From sequence record MK599315.1: DNA of 64,000 nucleotides; one strand, 5' to 3'. Position 1 is the stretch's first letter; each line of letters opens with the position of its first letter. Below the pieces are notes generated by a model. It was not told where the DNA came from. It searched no databases and saw only the letters and a list, made by a program, of their open reading frames with translations. Made by a program: the position numbers and the translations under genes. Positions 1,430 to 57,500 of this stretch are shown in pieces.

Positions 1430-3196
1430 ATGTCTAATGCTCTCTATGCAGTAACCGCAACTGACTGCTACAAGCCCGGCCATGGCGCTCTGTACCCGCA
1501 AGGTACCGAACGTAAGTATGCAAACTTCACCCCACGTTCTGCTAAGCAGTTCCTGCGGTCGAAGTCTTGCTCTGCGTTCTACGACAACAAAGTCGTTAAC
1601 TTCGGTCTGCAAGGTACCTGGCACGAACTGGTAGAACTGTGGGATCGTACCTTCTTCAATCTGCCTCGTGAAATCGCTGTTAAACGCGCTGCACGTCGTT
1701 TCGACAACATGTGCGGTAAAGGCGTTATCAAACACGAGTGTCTGTACAAGCTGCATGCTCTGGGTTACCTGCCTCTGACTGTGCTGGCTATTGACGAAGG
1801 CGAACGTGTAGATGTTGGCGTACCTACCTTTGTGGTTTACAACAGCCTGGATGACGATGATCACTACTGGCTGGTGAACTACCTGGAAACCATCGTCAGT
1901 GCCTACAACTGGAAGATGATCTGCAACGCAACTATTGCAGCTGAGTATCAGCGTGTACTGAACCACTACGCTGATCGCACCTGCGATAACCGTGAGCACG
2001 TCAAGTTCCAGGCACACGACTTCAGCTTCCGTGGTATGAGTGGTCCTGAAGATGCAATGCGTTCTGGTACAGCTCACCTGACTAGCTTCGCTGGTACCGA
2101 TACCATCCCGGCTCTCGATTACGCTGAGATGTATTACGGTGCTAACAGTGATACTGAATTGTTGGGTGCATCAGTTACTGCAACTGAACACGCTGTCGCC
2201 ACAACCAACATCCTGTACCGTCTGCAAATGAAGATCAACTTCCTCCAAGAGGAAGGTACTGTGATCACTCCGGAGCTGCATGACCAACTGCGACTGGAAG
2301 CTGAACGTGACTATATCCTGGAGATCATTCTTCAGAAAGTCCCGGAAGGCATTATTTCGCTGGTCTGTGATTCCTTCGATTTCTGGGGTGTTATCTCTGA
2401 TGTTCTCCCGAGCATCCGTGCAGAAATCGAAAGTCGTCTGAAGAACGAGCTGGGTCTGGCGAAAGTTGTTGTACGTCCTGACTCTGGTGATCCGGTTAAA
2501 GTCATCACTGGCTACATGGCTTATCCGATTAAATTCGCTGATCGTGTTGATTTCGAGAAACACATTGCCGAATACGGTTCCATTGAGTACGCTGGTTACG
2601 AAGTTGTTAGCGTAGGTGGTAAGTACTACGAGATCAACGACCTCGCTGTCAGTCTGTCTGACTTCCTCTCTGAGACTGAAATCCCTGAGGTGGAAGTACG
2701 TGGTGCAATTGAAGTCCTGTGGGACTCCTTCGGCGGCACTGAGAACAGTAAAGGCTTCAAGTGCCTGAACGAATACGTTGGCCTGATCTATGGTGACTCG
2801 ATCACTGTAGACCGTACCGAGCAGATCATGTCTCGCCTGGAACGTAAAGGCTTCGCTTCTAGCAACGTAGTTCTTGGTATCGGTAGCTTCACCTATCAGT
2901 ACAACACTCGCGATACTTTCGGCATGGCTGTCAAAGCTACTGCTGTTCAGATCGAAGACGAGTTCGTTGAACTGTACAAAGATCCTAAAGCTGCTTCTTC
3001 CAAGAAGTCGGCTAAAGGTTTCCTGCGTGTGGTGAAAACCGAAGATGGTAAGTTCGTTCTGGAACAAGAAGCTGACCTTAGCTGGGCTGCTTTGGAAACC
3101 GAATCGGGTGAACTTAAACTGTTCTTCAAGAATGGTGAGTTCTACAAGCACGACACGATGGCTAAGATCCGGGAACGGATTGCGACCTCTCTGTAA
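1430..3196 (+). CDS. Nicotinamide phosphoribosyltransferase-like protein, probable NARP1 Namat
   Basis: TDCYKPGH, HDFSFRG, ATEHAV, DSFDFW, RPDSGDP, YGDSIT, GIGSFTYQYNTRDTFG, KSAKG; RBS-preceded ATG at 1430. Confidence 0.9.
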   Translation: MSNALYAVTATDCYKPGHGALYPQGTERKYANFTPRSAKQFLRSKSCSAFYDNKVVNFGLQGTWHELVELWDRTFFNLPREIAVKRAARRFDNMCGKGVIKHECLYKLHALGYLPLTVLAIDEGERVDVGVPTFVVYNSLDDDDHYWLVNYLETIVSAYNWKMICNATIAAEYQRVLNHYADRTCDNREHVKFQAHDFSFRGMSGPEDAMRSGTAHLTSFAGTDTIPALDYAEMYYGANSDTELLGASVTATEHAVATTNILYRLQMKINFLQEEGTVITPELHDQLRLEAERDYILEIILQKVPEGIISLVCDSFDFWGVISDVLPSIRAEIESRLKNELGLAKVVVRPDSGDPVKVITGYMAYPIKFADRVDFEKHIAEYGSIEYAGYEVVSVGGKYYEINDLAVSLSDFLSETEIPEVEVRGAIEVLWDSFGGTENSKGFKCLNEYVGLIYGDSITVDRTEQIMSRLERKGFASSNVVLGIGSFTYQYNTRDTFGMAVKATAVQIEDEFVELYKDPKAASSKKSAKGFLRVVKTEDGKFVLEQEADLSWAALETESGELKLFFKNGEFYKHDTMAKIRERIATSL

Positions 3197-52653: not shown

Positions 52654-54510
52654 TTATGGCCTATATGCGTAGAGCTCATTACCTTTCACACCGTTTGGTC
52701 TATTACCGCCAGCGATATATAAGGTATCAGCACATGCAGCCATCATAGCAGCATCGCCGTTTATAGGAATGTCGGGGAGTCTTGTCCACGCACCACTGAC
52801 TGTATCATATTCCCAGAAATCATTCAATCCAGTGCTTGGACTAGCGCCGCCACCTATATAAAGTTTATTATCAATCGCAGCTAATAGACAACCTACACGA
52901 GCAACAAAGCTGGCGGGTACGTTAGATATGGTAGACCATGTACCAGCGACCAAATCAAGAACACGAATGGTTTTAGTCATGGTGTTAGAACTAATCCAAC
53001 CACAGGCAATGTAAAGTTTATTATTCACAATAACCATTGCCGCTCTAGCCAATCCTTCTGGAGCAAGTTGGGGTAATTTATACCATTTGCTTCCAGCCGC
53101 AGCATCTAAACTATAACGATAAATAGCTCTATCGGTGCGTCCATCATCACCAAAAAGATAGGCATATCTACCAAAAGATGTCATGCAGTGGTTTGTTCGC
53201 CATGTGGGTGCGTTTGGTTCAGATATACTGTCACTCCACTTGTCTTCTAGATGGTTATAAGAATACAGATCTGGAGAATAGTTACTACCAGAGAAAATAA
53301 GAATCTGGTCAGCGACAGTTGTGGCTGCCGATTGATAACGTGCAGGAGGTTTAACTGGTCCTTCTTTCCACGTATCTGTAAATACATCGTAAATCAAGTT
53401 TGTATTCTTTACTGCACCATCACTACCAAACATAACAAACAGTTCTGAATAAGTACTTGCTACGGCTGCTTGTACCCTACCGCCAGGCATGTCTGCTTTT
53501 CTTACCCATGTTTTCTCTGGGACAGGTTCCCAGTTTTCGGGAGCACGTGATACCTTGTAGATTTCTTTTATTTTATTTGTTGTGCTAGTCCAGTTAGTAG
53601 AGAATGGTTCAGATGTACCACCGACAATATAAATATCATCTTTTAGTCCAATAACACCCGACATGTTTCGATATGATAATCCGGTATCCGATGAGCGTGC
53701 CCAAGATTTTTTGACTGGATTATAACGATGGAGGTATATTTTGTTACCTTGACCGAGGTTACCCCAGCCTGTATAGTTATAGTAACCTTCATCATCAATA
53801 AAACCACCATGCCATACATGGTGATATGCAGGGTCCATTGTCTGCCATAATTCCCATTGTTTGGAAATAAGATTAAATCGATGTATTCTTAGGTTCTGAT
53901 TATTTGCCCATCCACCCAAACAATAGATATAATCACCATGTCCAAAAATTGACATACCTGCTAATATCCCACCACCGACATCATCAAAACTTGGTAATCC
54001 TGGATAATTTTCAAGAGTCGCGCCAGTAAGTGGATTTAATTTATAGAATCCGGCTTTATAACTGGGTAAAACATATATGTCCCCTCTATGTTGACATACA
54101 GCATTCCCATACGACGTCTGTGGTAAACGTCCTGTTAACTCAACTGCACTAGTTAACCCAGGTAAATTCAATGCACCTGTCGTTGATAAAAGACCAGCTA
54201 AATTAGTAGAAAATTGGCCGCCTGGTATTAGCATTCTATTATTATAAATAGTTGCTCCATTGATGGAAATAGTTCTAGCATGGTTTCCACCAACAGTCAT
54301 CGACATATCGGACAGTTTAAATATTTCAGTTGCAGAGCGGATAGCCCCAGTAGAATCTTGACCACCAACTACATATAAGTTATCGTTATCCATCGCAACG
54401 ATTGGACCTGCAATACCCACTGGAAGGTCAGCTACCTTCTTGGTTCGCATATAAAAGGGTACATAAGGAGTCCTCTCCCTTGCACCAGTACTGAGTAATA
54501 TCTCGAACAT
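52654..54510 (-). CDS. double kelch beta-propeller protein (about 12 repeats)
   Basis: Repeats LYVVGG, IYCLGG, IYIVGG, LFVMFG, ILIFSG, AYLFG, LYIACG, LYIGGG, LYIAGG; starts MFEILL. Confidence 0.92.
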   Translation of the reverse strand: MFEILLSTGARERTPYVPFYMRTKKVADLPVGIAGPIVAMDNDNLYVVGGQDSTGAIRSATEIFKLSDMSMTVGGNHARTISINGATIYNNRMLIPGGQFSTNLAGLLSTTGALNLPGLTSAVELTGRLPQTSYGNAVCQHRGDIYVLPSYKAGFYKLNPLTGATLENYPGLPSFDDVGGGILAGMSIFGHGDYIYCLGGWANNQNLRIHRFNLISKQWELWQTMDPAYHHVWHGGFIDDEGYYNYTGWGNLGQGNKIYLHRYNPVKKSWARSSDTGLSYRNMSGVIGLKDDIYIVGGTSEPFSTNWTSTTNKIKEIYKVSRAPENWEPVPEKTWVRKADMPGGRVQAAVASTYSELFVMFGSDGAVKNTNLIYDVFTDTWKEGPVKPPARYQSAATTVADQILIFSGSNYSPDLYSYNHLEDKWSDSISEPNAPTWRTNHCMTSFGRYAYLFGDDGRTDRAIYRYSLDAAAGSKWYKLPQLAPEGLARAAMVIVNNKLYIACGWISSNTMTKTIRVLDLVAGTWSTISNVPASFVARVGCLLAAIDNKLYIGGGASPSTGLNDFWEYDTVSGAWTRLPDIPINGDAAMMAACADTLYIAGGNRPNGVKGNELYAYRP

Positions 54511-54576: not shown

Positions 54577-55233
54577 TTACTTAGTTATTGTCAAATCAAT
54601 ATTCACTAAAGAGCCTTGTAGTTGAGGTTCATCTTTCTCTACAATATGAAAAGATGCTTTATTACCGTAAATACCTTTAAGAGCTTCTTCAAAGGCATAT
54701 ATCGATACATACGCCACATCCATATAAAAATTATATTTTATAATTTGTGGATTAGCTGTATATCCGGGTAATGCAGCTTGATCATTATTAACTGTGAACC
54801 ATAGCCCCTCACATACAACATGATTAATTCTTTCTAGCACTTTATTTAATTCGATAAGATCTGTTAATCGACCCACGTTTTTATCATCCCGAATTACTCT
54901 AGTAGCTTCTTCCTCAGTCAGAGGTAATACGATAACATGTTTACCTACATATTCTTGAAAATATGGCGTGGATGTTTCTATTGAAAATACGTTAGCGAAG
55001 CCAAAACCATCGTAATATGTATCTGGTGTTTCCCGATTCACGCCAATCGAGTCTAATAAGCTACCATACAAATACCCTTCGGCTATTACCTCATAGGACA
55101 CCAAAGTCCTAAAATATTTCTTACCCTCTTCGGGGAGGGGTCCCGCATGTGTTTTATGCCAAACGGTATCTATAACCTGGACTTTCATCAAATCAGGTAA
55201 TCCCAAAAACAGGCCTTTTGATCTATTCAACAT
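54577..55233 (-). CDS. hypothetical protein
   Basis: GGAG RBS, 218 aa. Confidence 0.75.
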   Translation of the reverse strand: MLNRSKGLFLGLPDLMKVQVIDTVWHKTHAGPLPEEGKKYFRTLVSYEVIAEGYLYGSLLDSIGVNRETPDTYYDGFGFANVFSIETSTPYFQEYVGKHVIVLPLTEEEATRVIRDDKNVGRLTDLIELNKVLERINHVVCEGLWFTVNNDQAALPGYTANPQIIKYNFYMDVAYVSIYAFEEALKGIYGNKASFHIVEKDEPQLQGSLVNIDLTITK

Positions 55234-55281
55234 TTTCAGTATCTCCTATAACTCCGATATTGGAGTATAACATCACGGCAT

Positions 55282-55308
55282 AAAAGAGTAGCCATTGGCT
55301 ACTCTTTT
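55282..55308 (-). terminator. terminator after the tRNA-Asn 3' fragment
   Basis: AAAAGAGTAGCC-ATT-GGCTACTCTTTT; near-duplicate at 55970-55993. Confidence 0.8.
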
Positions 55309-55313
55309 GAATT

Positions 55314-55348
55314 TGGCTCCGCGACCTGGACTCGAACCAGGGACCCAG
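55314..55348 (-). pseudogene. 3' half (positions about 42-76) of a disrupted tRNA-Asn
   Basis: CTGGGTC-CCTGG-TTCGAGT-CCAGG-TCGCGGA-G-CCA. Confidence 0.9.
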
Positions 55349-55359
55349 TATATTTTTTT

Positions 55360-55917
55360 TTATTGTGTGGGGACCAAGGTGCTAATACCCCCATTAGCAC
55401 CGACCCTAATAAACCTAGCCGGAATATTGATCTTGTATGCTCGGCACCATTTACGAATAGCGTTATCGGATACTCCATACTTCTCTCCTATATTTACAAG
55501 AGATAGCAATGTAACATCGAGGGCAAGTTGTTCTTTGGATGGTCGATCCACCTTACGACGACCTTTGGCAGAACACTCGGGGCTACAGAATGTTATCAGT
55601 CGGTGACTAATGACAATACCACAGCCAGCACAAAGCTTAGTTGGATAGTTCCTAGGATCAATACCGAGCCGTTTCATCCAACCATGTAACTTCATGTGTT
55701 GTGACTGAGGGAGAATCAATAAGTTCTCTGGATGGTTGTTAAGCTTATTCTCATCCAGATGATGAACTTCCTCGTCATCGTAAAGTGGTCTACCTAATGT
55801 GTCTTCTCCAACCACTCGATGTTCGTAAACCCATCCAAACATTTTAGGGTTAGCTATGGCTTGACGATGTTCGGGTAAATATAATGCCCTATAGCCGTTA
55901 ATTATTTTCTCTTTCAT
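55360..55917 (-). CDS. HNH homing endonuclease (HNH + CxxC/CSxxC zinc finger + HTH)
   Basis: YEHRVV...EVHHLDENKLNNHPENL...HMKLH; CAGC...CSPEC; IGEKYGVSDNAIRKW. Confidence 0.93.
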   Translation of the reverse strand: MKEKIINGYRALYLPEHRQAIANPKMFGWVYEHRVVGEDTLGRPLYDDEEVHHLDENKLNNHPENLLILPQSQHMKLHGWMKRLGIDPRNYPTKLCAGCGIVISHRLITFCSPECSAKGRRKVDRPSKEQLALDVTLLSLVNIGEKYGVSDNAIRKWCRAYKINIPARFIRVGANGGISTLVPTQ

Positions 55918-55969
55918 ATCGAACCTAGGATATATAAATAGATCGCTAGTTCGATCTATGTAACGGAAT

Positions 55970-55993
55970 AAAGAGTAGCCGGAGCTACTCTTT
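55970..55993 (-). terminator. terminator after the cassette-borne tRNA-Asn
   Basis: AAAGAGTAGC-CGGA-GCTACTCTTT. Confidence 0.75.
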
Positions 55994-55998
55994 GAAAT

Positions 55999-56085
55999 TG
56001 GCTGGTAAGGTAGGATTCGAACCTACGATGGGCTTTCGCCAACGGATTAACAGTCCGCCCCCTGCTACCGCTCGGGTACTTACCA
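55999..56085 (-). tRNA. tRNA-Asn(GTT) with long variable arm (class II-like body)
   Basis: TGGTAAG/CTTACCA acceptor stem, G73, GCGGA-CTGTTAA-TCCGT, variable stem GGC-GAAA-GCC, CCA. Confidence 0.93.
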
Positions 56086-56096
56086 AGAAAACTATC

Positions 56097-56130
56097 CAGT
56101 CGCTTGCTCTACCGACTGAGCTATCGCGGA
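56097..56130 (-). pseudogene. 5' half (positions 1-34) of a disrupted tRNA-Asn
   Basis: TCCGCGA-TA-GCTC-AGTCGGTA-GAGC-A-AGCGA-CTG; acceptor TCCGCGA pairs perfectly with TCGCGGA of the 55314-55348 fragment. Confidence 0.9.
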
Positions 56131-56492
56131 AGAATTATTAACAACTTCTTTCTTGTGGAAAAACCACAGGTAACTGAATTACAGTATTTCACTACATATT
56201 ATTACAATCTGAGTATTATTATTATTTCTTGTCATAACAAGAATGTAAATAACGTGTAGTTAACCTTATTATAAGTTATCGAAGTTACTAATTCTAACTA
56301 AAACGAACCACTATTACATCCGTACCAAAAGTATCTTCAACCCACTGGTTAAATTCTTTATCAGTGATACCACGTAGGTTCAAATTAAATAAAGAATTGT
56401 CAACAAGAATATATCGAACAGCTGAATTATAGTACTCTTAGATACCATAATCGTGTTAGATAATTATCTAAATAGTTATAAATATTATCATT

Positions 56493-57500
56493 TTAATCAA
56501 TGGCTAATGGTGCTAGTTTTACCTGATATATACCTGATAACAATTGGCTTTTTAACATATATGCTCCACCACCAACTGGCATTTTAGATCCACCTGCAAT
56601 GATCATGCTATTATCTGGACCTTTGGCTATAGATGAAATATTAAGGAATCCAATACCTAGTTCAAATGGTTCAGCCCATTTCCGGCGTCTAATATTAAAA
56701 CGCTGTGCAAACATTTTAGTTACACCACCGACATCAACTGCATTAAGGTAATTAAAATATTCCCCATCTACATAACCATTACCTTGCCATATTGTTGCTT
56801 TGTCAATAGGTATTATTAGCCATGGTGTTAGTTCCCATACAAGTGTAGTAACATTGTATCTATAGACTTCTAAGTTTGGTATGTTCTTAGTATTATCCCA
56901 GCCACCAAAATGATAGAAATAACCATTATAATAAAATAATTGTTGACCTGACCTAGGTCCACCGCTATAGTCTTGACCGCCGAGCCAGTTCTTACTCGAT
57001 GGTTTTAATCGCATGGCGTTTGCACCAACTGGATTAACACACATAATAAGATCATTGCCATCAGACGCTGACGCAGTTCCCCATAATGCACCAGGGCCAC
57101 TATAACGCTCAACGCGACTACCTGTGCTTATATCAAAATGTTGTATAAAGTTAGAAGTACCTGTACCCCCATCACCTGCTGCGTTCCATCCAGTAATACC
57201 ACCATAAACAATAAAGTTATTTTTATGTAATGTACCAAATCCAAGTGATACACCCGGTAAAAATGTACCAGATGCTGTCGCGCTTATCTCTGCAAATGGG
57301 TTTATAGTGAACTGTCTGAAAACAGTTGCCGCTGATTGTCCTTCCGTATGATGTCCGGATCCAACATATAACGTATTTCCATCTACGTACGACATCGTAC
57401 CTGCCAATGCTACTGGTAGGTCACCTAATTTTACAATTTCATTGAATCCAACCAAGGGTGTTTCGTTGTCTAAACCTGATGATAATAGTAATTCAAACAT
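56493..57500 (-). CDS. kelch-repeat beta-propeller protein
   Basis: Repeats LYVGSG, FIVYGG, FYHFGG, MIIAGG; starts MFELLL; similar to the N-terminal propeller of 52654-54510. Confidence 0.85.
   Translation of the reverse strand: MFELLLSSGLDNETPLVGFNEIVKLGDLPVALAGTMSYVDGNTLYVGSGHHTEGQSAATVFRQFTINPFAEISATASGTFLPGVSLGFGTLHKNNFIVYGGITGWNAAGDGGTGTSNFIQHFDISTGSRVERYSGPGALWGTASASDGNDLIMCVNPVGANAMRLKPSSKNWLGGQDYSGGPRSGQQLFYYNGYFYHFGGWDNTKNIPNLEVYRYNVTTLVWELTPWLIIPIDKATIWQGNGYVDGEYFNYLNAVDVGGVTKMFAQRFNIRRRKWAEPFELGIGFLNISSIAKGPDNSMIIAGGSKMPVGGGAYMLKSQLLSGIYQVKLAPLAID

Follow-up and report, generated by a model that had tools for sequence, protein, structure and literature searches.

A putative homing-endonuclease cassette with a long-variable-arm tRNA-Asn inside the split tRNA-Asn gene of Pseudomonas jumbo phage PA1C

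Homing endonucleases are known to travel beside or within genes, and what normally keeps them harmless is a self-splicing intron, an intein, or a position next to a resistant allele. Here we describe a locus of PA1C, a phiKZ-like jumbo phage of Pseudomonas aeruginosa (record MK599315, 304,671 bp), which we read, with a probability of about 0.72, as a free-standing homing-endonuclease cassette inserted within the anticodon loop of a tRNA-Asn gene of host type that the phage carries. The cassette consists of a spacer, a tRNA-Asn(GUU) with a long variable arm (long-arm tRNA), a terminator and an HNH endonuclease gene. An element of this type would break its target outright and compensate with a cargo gene of the same function and a different architecture, which would amount to a third way of being tolerated. 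In a megablast search, 54800-56600 matched PA1C at 100%. The window analysed is the last 64 kb of the record; positions refer to this window, and the features of the locus lie on its minus strand.

The closest described system is SegB of phage T4, which recognises a motif of tRNA genes, the T-psi-C stem-loop, and in mixed infection causes its own gene and the neighbouring tRNA genes to be inherited preferentially (PMC2330249). Like the PA1C element, SegB is encoded by a free-standing endonuclease gene among phage tRNA genes, without an intron, and a tRNA gene moves along with it. However, SegB is a GIY-YIG enzyme whereas the PA1C protein belongs to HNH_3, and SegB lies between tRNA genes whereas the PA1C element lies inside one, splitting and destroying it at the anticodon loop. 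The PA1C element also carries a tRNA with the same anticodon and of a different structural class as compensation, which SegB does not; this compensating cargo is what is new relative to known intronless homing. Activity has been demonstrated for SegB and is predicted for the PA1C protein. Literature searches returned no account of the split tRNA-Asn or of a long-arm tRNA-Asn, and none in which gp296 is a tRNA-targeting enzyme.

Other known systems share individual features with the locus. The I-HmuI-type HNH_3 endonucleases of phage group I introns have the same profile family, size and plan of an N-terminal HNH and a C-terminal helix-turn-helix, but the PA1C gene has no surrounding intron ribozyme, and a tRNA gene takes the place of a protein-coding one as the target. 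Group I introns in the anticodon loops of bacterial tRNA genes occupy the same insertion point, and the copy of the element in phiKZ is formally an "intron" at position 37; in contrast to these introns, the element has no ribozyme, its exons are incomplete in PA1C, and the insert holds a whole tRNA gene, whose own terminator would end transcription before the 3' half. The replacement tRNA resembles class II tRNAs (Leu, Ser and bacterial Tyr) in its 3-bp D stem, enlarged D loop and 15-nt variable stem-loop, whereas GUU, G73 and U1-A72 are asparagine features and its arm is just 3 bp long. The phage tRNAs used to bypass tRNA-cleaving host defences (T5 against PARIS, retron-Eco7 and PrrC) are likewise phage variants of a nuclease-targeted tRNA, including tRNA-Asn(GUU) (PMC12409363; PMC11555353). 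The escape tRNAs described so far carry point changes in the anticodon stem-loop, whereas the PA1C replacement changes the tRNA class, and its resistance to host anticodon nucleases is plausible by analogy only.

Inspection of the locus revealed, in the order claimed by an earlier note made from the letters alone, every element of a split gene with an insert. A 5' remnant of a class I, host-type tRNA-Asn (nt 1-34, TCCGCGATAGCTCAGTCGGTAGAGCAAGCGACTG; 56130-56097) ends ...GCGACTG at G34 of the anticodon and matches the Pseudomonas chromosomal tRNA-Asn at 32 of 34 positions. The inserted cassette begins with an 11-nt spacer (GATAGTTTTCT; 56096-56086), followed by the 87-nt replacement tRNA-Asn(GUU) (56085-55999; ARAGORN tRNA-Asn(gtt), Rfam tRNA 54.2 bits) and by a terminator-like hairpin that belongs to the cassette (AAAGAGTAGC-TCCG-GCTACTCTTT; 55993-55970; minimum free energy (MFE) -15.0 kcal/mol). 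Just 5' of the HNH start lies an 8-bp inverted repeat (ATAGATCG....CGATCTAT; 55959-55938; MFE -8.8 kcal/mol), which appeared terminator-like in the scan and is kept in phiKZ. The HNH open reading frame (ORF; 185 aa, Pfam HNH_3) spans 55917-55360, and the 3' remnant of the same class I gene (nt 42-76, CTGGGTCCCTGGTTCGAGTCCAGGTCGCGGAGCCA; 55348-55314) is identical to the host tRNA-Asn from GGGTCC to CCA. A second terminator-like hairpin (55308-55282; MFE -16.5 kcal/mol), a near-duplicate of the first, is the resident terminator of the interrupted gene; together with the sequence downstream it also lies 3' of the uninterrupted tRNA-Asn in phage HPP-Temi. Homologues of the first hairpin follow the long-arm tRNA in phiKZ, Psa21 and the contig L024 of the IMG/VR database, and the class I tRNA-Asn at a second phiKZ-group site (site B, below) and in HPP-Temi. 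A simple terminator scan called neither of the two GAGTAGC hairpins, and "terminator-like" refers here to folding energy only.

The two halves are clearly parts of one gene. Their acceptor strands (TCCGCGA and TCGCGGA) pair perfectly, as had been noted, and only nt 35-41 are missing between them in PA1C. When they were joined and the anticodon-stem pairs were left free, the result did not differ from the tRNA-Asn on the chromosome of at least 120 Pseudomonas-group genomes, including that of P. paraeruginosa (TCCGCGATAGCTCAGTCGGTAGAGCAAATGACTGTTAATCATTGGGTCCCTGGTTCGAGTCCAGGTCGCGGAGCCA), which bears out the resemblance to Pseudomonas tRNA-Asn proposed before. The T-arm motif GGTTCRANYCC occurred 8 times in the window against 0.43 expected, seven times in called tRNAs and once in the 3' half, and the D-arm motif at 56106-56123 in the 5' half was the sole match outside a called tRNA (0.01 expected by chance). 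The halves thus hold the window's only D-arm and T-arm motifs outside called tRNAs, so that their presence is not due to chance. Since two of the anticodon bases are among the missing nt 35-41, splicing could not restore this tRNA. Upstream of the interrupted gene, an AT-rich promoter-like motif (ATTGTAATAATATGTAG; 56192..56208, minus strand) is identical in phage BRkr and at the corresponding site (site A) of phiKZ, and similar TGTAATA-N-TATGTAG motifs precede the tRNA units at site B, the stand-alone long-arm gene of L024, and HPP-Temi. We infer that it is the promoter that would drive the 5' half, the spacer and the replacement tRNA.

Analysis of the replacement tRNA showed that it is a long-variable-arm, class II-like molecule. 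It had been described in the earlier note as a complete and divergent tRNA-Asn(GTT); the 87-nt length of a whole tRNA and the GTT anticodon were found as described, but the long variable arm had been missed. In the ARAGORN drawing its D stem has 3 bp and its D loop 11 nt, and the variable region of 15 nt forms a 3-bp stem with a GAAA loop; it has a GUU anticodon, U1-A72, G73 and an encoded CCA. Class II architecture has been described for Leu, Ser, bacterial Tyr and Sec only (PMC9976931). The PA1C tRNA has the variable region of more than 10 nt with a stem-loop and the 3-bp D stem of this class, but not one of these isotypes, its anticodon being GUU. With the class I target it shares only an 11-nt core (GACTGTTAATC) and differs everywhere else.

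Comparison of nine family members revealed that 99.5% of the cells in the cloverleaf and the variable-arm helix pair, with compensatory changes in 18 of 23 pairs; none of 500 shuffles scored as high, and slid registers were far below too. In the variable arm, all three pairs exhibited compensatory changes and 100% of the scored cells pair. The replacement tRNA is therefore under structural selection, as judged from these alignments. It is 95-100% conserved across 22 phiKZ-like records, and in BLAST searches the long-arm type was annotated as tRNA-Asn in these 22 records, in Psa21, in the 93-kb P. fluorescens phage Y1-MI, in Proteus T5-like phages, in many Tequintavirus genomes and in a T4-like Erwinia phage. 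It stays intact in eight genomes that lost the HNH gene, and L024 contains a Psa21-type long-arm tRNA as a stand-alone gene with a promoter-like motif and a hairpin. In phage T2P, no other tRNA-Asn was found in the 6-kb stretch examined.

The end of the acceptor stem differed with the host: U1-A72 and G73 occurred in all five members from Pseudomonas phages, and G1-C72 in all three from enterobacterial phages. P. aeruginosa makes Asn-tRNA through an aspartyl-tRNA synthetase that is non-discriminating (ND-AspRS) and GatCAB (PMC2330236), GatCAB requires U1-A72 (PMC1635274), and the identity rules include the GUU anticodon and the G73 discriminator (PMC9976931). The observed pattern would fit a working tRNA-Asn that is adapted to its host and charged with asparagine. 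On the other hand, G73 together with a long arm makes mischarging by seryl-tRNA synthetase formally possible. U20a, a supernumerary nucleotide of the D loop, is an antideterminant for the transamidation route, and the enlarged 11-nt D loop could hold extra nucleotides at position 20 and thus an antideterminant.

Occupied alleles were found in several related phages. The sequence of BRkr shows the same architecture as PA1C, and phiHQ and phiLBG22 contain an 87-nt tRNA identical to that of PA1C and an HNH protein that is 99% identical. Ten phiKZ-group records carry the cassette. In phiKZ, site A lies downstream of PHIKZ297 and consists of tRNA-Asn nt 1-37, the spacer CGATTTCAT, an 87-nt tRNA(GUU), a hairpin, PHIKZ296 (HNH), about 50 nt, and tRNA-Asn nt 38-76, and ARAGORN in intron mode reported a tRNA-Asn with a 774-nt insert at position 37. 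Both halves are complete in phiKZ, with a stem mismatch and a T loop with U57. The right junction of PA1C shows a 31-nt deletion relative to phiKZ, located between two ACT triplets. PhiKZ keeps these 31 nt, which include nt 38-41, and this deletion explains why nt 38-41 are missing in PA1C. The PA1C spacer is homologous to GATACGTTTTAAAAT in Psa21 and to (G)TTACGATTTCAT in phiKZ, and it accompanies the cassette into differing tRNA contexts. An insertion of the phiKZ cassette exactly at 37/38 was considered and dropped after comparison of the spacers across PA1C, phiKZ and Psa21.

In all ten phiKZ-group records, the start of the HNH gene contains an extra A in the A-run after the ATG (atgaaagaaaaaaata, compared with atgaaagagaaaata in PA1C; phiKZ, L003 2050-2062, minus strand). 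This puts the ATG of PHIKZ296 out of frame, so that protein could be made only from an internal start at Met26 or by slippage; the phiKZ-group enzyme would thus be either crippled or dependent on slippage for its full length. The TTCTAAC T loop of the phiKZ 3' half was at first taken for decay after insertion, an explanation that we rejected on finding it in the uninterrupted allele of PA02 too. The T loop of the site-A tRNA-Asn varies among phiKZ-like phages (TTCGAGT, TTCGAAC and TTCTAAC, in alleles including L011 from PA02 and L003 from phiKZ), and since the U57 variant is also present in an uninterrupted allele, the site-A copy may already be under relaxed selection.

Outside the phiKZ group, Psa21 (Tepukevirus) contains a homologous spacer, long-arm tRNA, hairpin and HNH gene (65% identical) behind a different 5' tRNA fragment. 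In L034, a 310-kb IMG/VR phage contig, positions 2557-3146 contain the first 23 nt of a Psa21-type long-arm tRNA and then another long-arm tRNA-Asn with U1-A72 and G73; the HNH protein there (138 aa) is unrelated and belongs to a different PHROG family. We regard this arrangement, as it appears from its sequence, as a second-generation overwrite at the same locus. L034 was one of the useful matches, with L024 and L026 (= Psa21), in an IMG/VR scan with TGGTAAGTASCCGAG, in which 25 of 28 matches were unrelated; a metagenome scan with the 16-mer CCTTACCAGCCAATTT listed 120 matches, all of which were attributable to chance after filtering.

Uninterrupted alleles, for which the earlier note had called, were found in three lineages (Phikzvirus, the PA1C lineage and the Psa21 lineage). 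Site A is an uninterrupted 76-nt tRNA-Asn in PA7, PhiPizzaParty, PA02, fMGyn-Pae01 and Churi, and measures 850 nt in phiKZ. The 400-nt flanks are 98-100% identical to those of phiKZ in PA7, PhiPizzaParty, PA02 and Churi, and in fMGyn-Pae01 they are 99.8% identical upstream and 94.1% downstream. The PA1C lineage is represented by HPP-Temi, where an intact, diverged tRNA-Asn of class I lies directly upstream of the terminator and the 218-aa gene that are also present in PA1C. The Psa21 lineage is represented by phage D6, which carries two class I tRNA-Asn genes in tandem, without an HNH.

The phiKZ-group phages also have a second tRNA-Asn gene, site B, which adjoins tRNA-Asp about 2.1 kb from site A; phiKZ and the naive phages have it intact. 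Three phages, fMGyn-Pae01, Churi and T2P, have at site B a 5' half in which T replaces G34, a CGATTTCAT spacer identical to that of phiKZ, and the long-arm tRNA, which is followed directly by the site-B terminator, with neither HNH nor 3' half. Since the left junction is the same at both sites and the outer flanks are unrelated, two distinct tRNA-Asn genes have been entered by the element. The terminator of the cassette and that of site B are homologous, and recombination between them would delete exactly the HNH gene and the 3' half. Cultured phages thus include a naive stage (PA7, PhiPizzaParty, PA02, HPP-Temi and D6), an invaded stage (PA1C and BRkr), an attenuated stage (the phiKZ group) and a stage with the endonuclease lost (fMGyn-Pae01, Churi and T2P, with OMKO1 likewise counted). 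No other host-like tRNA-Asn was seen in PA1C, BRkr and Psa21, in which the HNH ORF is intact, as would be expected under the homing reading.

The HNH gene is a separate ORF with its own start codon. Its product matched HNH_3 (PF13392) over residues 31-75 with 41.2 bits against a cut-off of 24.8 (E = 1.3e-10), and phrog_15471, "HNH endonuclease", with E = 4e-52. The N-terminal HNH_3 nuclease is followed by a Cys4 motif and a C-terminal helix-turn-helix (GVSDNAIRKWC), and H52, H53, N60, N61, N65, H74, H78 and the four Cys were invariant in an alignment of six homologues. The AlphaFold2 model had a mean predicted local distance difference test score (pLDDT) of 82.9. In tblastn searches, close copies were found only in phages of the phiKZ, PA1C and Psa21 types, and relatives with 32-42% identity in large phages, among them SPO1-like phages of Bacillus.

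A pattern-based search of IMG/VR yielded 80 loci with relatives of this protein, 75 of which have a tRNA within 1.5 kb. These loci contain 351 tRNAs in 253 kb, and 343 of the 351 are on the strand of the HNH gene. Many of the matches share only the C-terminal module of Cys4 and helix-turn-helix (...GVSDNAIRKWC...), fused to either of two HNH subtypes; the module probably reads tRNA genes. At 15 of the 80 loci, ARAGORN in intron mode placed the HNH gene inside a tRNA anticodon loop, after halves overlapping ordinary tRNAs had been filtered out (L165 465-1142; L167 1418-2095; L191 and L199, both 1011-1821; and further L188, L189, L190, L193, L195, L200, L210, L227-229 and L232). The genes invaded in these uncultivated phages are those of tRNA-Trp, Thr, Pro, Arg, Gln, Ile, Leu and Gly, and both halves are intact. 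Verification by eye of tRNA-Trp in L165, where the HNH protein is 43% identical to that of PA1C, and of tRNA-Thr in L191 showed halves that pair perfectly; the ends of the L165 insert are complementary (ATGTAATT / AATTACAT). Insertion in the anticodon loop is thus a recurrent habit of the family. Since none of these anticodon-loop loci carries a replacement tRNA, a substitute tRNA as cargo appears, from the loci compared, to be special to the phiKZ/PA1C/Psa21 element.

These comparisons suggest the following route. In a mixed infection, the HNH protein would recognise the uninterrupted class I tRNA-Asn gene of a related phage, binding probably through its C-terminal zinc/helix-turn-helix module, and would nick or cut it near the anticodon. 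Recombinational repair would then copy the donor cassette, for which both the tRNA halves and the flanks in the genome would serve as homology arms. With the target gene destroyed, the carrier would be immune to re-cutting, and the replacement tRNA gene would itself be resistant to cleavage. Transcription of the cargo tRNA would start from the promoter-like motif captured from the resident gene and end at the tRNA's own hairpin, and this tRNA would restore decoding of AAY codons. Later decay would account for the loss of 31 nt at the right junction in PA1C, the frameshifted HNH start in the phiKZ group, and the loss of the HNH gene and the 3' half in the fMGyn/T2P group, in which the long-arm tRNA would be left as a permanent replacement. 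The occupation of two tRNA-Asn genes with the same left junction, together with the residence of the HNH relatives in tRNA arrays and in some cases inside anticodon loops, supports the homing proposed in the earlier note.

Several observations weigh against this reading. The cleavage and homing assigned to the HNH protein are predictions from sequence comparison. A phmmer search of the protein against the PDB gave no match at E up to 1, and a Foldseek search of its model against the PDB gave nothing below E = 0.79, with weak similarities to helix-turn-helix folds only; as I-HmuI was not recovered, the family assignment comes from Pfam and PHROG. PhiKZ retains an intact target-like copy at site B beside its HNH gene with the frameshifted start, which agrees with the model only if the enzyme has no activity or little expression, or if it recognises more than the tRNA, and the association of an intact HNH gene with the absence of a remaining target extends to two or three lineages only. 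The left junction can be placed only within nt 33-37, because the first bases of the spacer (GATA or GTTA) mimic the anticodon. The PA1C and phiKZ cassettes are 83-95% identical, similar to the neighbouring conserved gene (85.7%), so that they do not speak for a recent transfer between these two lineages, and within lineages the polymorphism may have arisen not only through gain but also through loss by gene conversion.

The same data bear on whether the structure was produced in some other way. That it is an artefact of assembly or annotation is hardly conceivable: ten phiKZ-group genomes from different laboratories and platforms carry the architecture, BRkr, phiHQ and phiLBG22 share the architecture or the tRNA and HNH gene, which excludes the mis-assembly of which the earlier note had warned, and recurrence in 14 independently sequenced genomes was found in all; nothing spoke in its favour. 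It is very improbable that the halves are exons joined by a ribozyme or by proteins, leaving the resident tRNA functional. The phiKZ halves are complete with the insert at about 37/38, the canonical position of tRNA introns, and the halves in the IMG/VR relatives are intact, with complementary insert ends in L165; however, PA1C lacks nt 35-41, exons that join to a complete tRNA exist only in phiKZ, the phiKZ halves contain the stem mismatch and the U57 T loop, and the non-coding parts of the L165 insert (~45 + 21 nt) are too short for a ribozyme core. RF00028 and related intron families gave no match in PA1C at E up to 1, and Rfam searches gave no intron match in phiKZ, Psa21 and L034 at 0.1 and no ribozyme at 13 loci of HNH relatives, with tRNA matches only. 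A group I or other intron was therefore rejected, there being no ribozyme core (P3-P9) in PA1C, phiKZ, Psa21, L034 or the 13 loci, and the statement of the earlier note that this is not a spliceable intron holds on both grounds, the missing nucleotides and the Rfam result.

A passive origin, in which the HNH and tRNA genes landed once by illegitimate recombination and were inherited vertically without specificity for tRNA-Asn, and the polymorphism arose by gene-conversion losses from the second copy, is unlikely. The divergence between the PA1C and phiKZ cassettes, which matches that of the flanking gene, the tolerance of phiKZ for an intact tRNA-Asn alongside the HNH gene and the degraded right junction of PA1C would all be expected of such a scar, but two different tRNA-Asn genes are occupied with the same junction, a homologous cassette lies behind a different tRNA fragment in Psa21, an unrelated HNH gene accompanies an analogous overwrite in L034, and relatives lie inside the anticodon loops of the eight other tRNA species named above. 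Taken together, these four observations argue for targeted insertion. A role in counter-defence or codon use is possible, though we consider it doubtful as the whole explanation: the long-arm tRNA-Asn would be kept because it escapes a nuclease that targets tRNA-Asn or serves an AAU-rich codon usage, and the HNH enzyme would merely spread or amplify the useful allele, in the way that SegB acts on the tRNA genes of T-even phages. The PARIS effector AriB is documented to attack host tRNA-Asn(GUU) as a secondary target, and full rescue needs T5 tRNA variants that include tRNA-Asn (PMC12409363); the long-arm tRNA also outlasts the HNH gene in the eight genomes mentioned and stands alone in L024, Y1-MI and enterobacterial phages. 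In contrast, the anticodon stem-loop of the PA1C replacement (GCGGACUGUUAAUCCGU) is ordinary and does not differ from that of the copy in the Erwinia phage, a nuclease of Pseudomonas that targets tRNA-Asn was not identified in this analysis, and none of the present data tie the long arm to nuclease resistance, although Septu is known to cut a variable loop (PMC13096335). Furthermore, the tRNA-Asn of T5 is class I-like, so that the PARIS result does not concern the long-arm tRNA. This explanation complements homing and is not exclusive of it.

Homing and escape may also be combined, in a form that we advance only as a speculation. The zinc/helix-turn-helix HNH family would specialise in the invasion of phage tRNA genes at the anticodon loop, tRNA-Asn would escape by a change of architecture, and the endonuclease would travel with the escape allele as a tRNA-class gene drive. 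The variable-arm insertion of about 10 bp would shift the spacing between the T-arm box, bound by the DNA-binding module, and the anticodon, where the cut is made, rendering the gene uncuttable while the tRNA still works, and L034 would represent the next round of the same race. As a corollary, the many HNH-split tRNA genes of uncultivated phages that have intact halves and no ribozyme may be matured by a protein-dependent route.

On the reading of the locus as a homing cassette, the element offers a mechanism for overwriting and diversifying phage tRNA repertoires and bears on the question of why phages carry tRNAs. Since all stages of the homing-endonuclease life cycle occur in cultured phages of one host, the phiKZ model system lends itself directly to tests of homing, of target specificity and of effects on fitness. 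The class II-like tRNA-Asn family spans Pseudomonas, T5-like and T4-like phages, and because Pseudomonas makes its Asn-tRNA through ND-AspRS and GatCAB, it also bears on the rules of tRNA identity.

Long-arm tRNAs of other phages showed additional variation. Caulobacter phages contain a "tRNA-Lys(CUU)" similar to the long-arm tRNA-Asn; that of CcrColossus (L042 800-889) is a 90-nt long-arm tRNA with the anticodon CTT (Lys), about 80% similar and with the same GAAA loop in the variable arm. Class II-like tRNAs for the AAN codon box may thus be a wider phage phenomenon. Among T5-like phages the tRNA-Asn locus is polymorphic: the tRNA-Asn of T5 (L245 6953-7030) is a 78-nt class I-like molecule preceded and overlapped by an extra ORF, T5.069; a long-arm tRNA-Asn of 83 nt is present in GEC_vB_N3 (L041 780-862) and in many further genomes of Tequintavirus. 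The PARIS-evading tRNA-Asn of T5 was for this reason rejected as a relative of the long-arm type, which only some other T5-like phages carry. Y1-MI contains T-arm and D-arm pieces 3' of its long-arm tRNA (L006 1590-1760), and HPP-Temi contains an orphan tRNA fragment beside its tRNA-Asn (GCGGGTAGCTCAGT…; L164 2577-2665); both look like scars of earlier events.

The genes that flank the PA1C locus at 52654-54510 and 56493-57500 (minus strand) are paralogues, and the annotation of both points to similarity with PHIKZ298, a structural protein of the virion that contains Kelch/NanM-like repeats. For the 218-aa ORF at 54577-55233, neither Pfam nor PHROG gave a match; because the same gene adjoins the empty site of HPP-Temi, it lies outside the cassette. 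The phage tRNA array of L200 includes, beside an HNH relative, a full-length ROOL RNA (2379-2968; 320.6 bits for Rfam RF03087). A conserved element of ~120-200 nt (…CTCAACAGAAGGCACTT.GGTGCAGAA.TAAAACGAGGCG…GACCTG.CGCGCAGGGTAATCAG…), which had no match in Rfam, was found between tRNA genes in three Psa21-like phages (Psa21, L005 ~1210-1330; L034 ~2300-2430; D6, L246 ~1515-1640) and may be a structured RNA.

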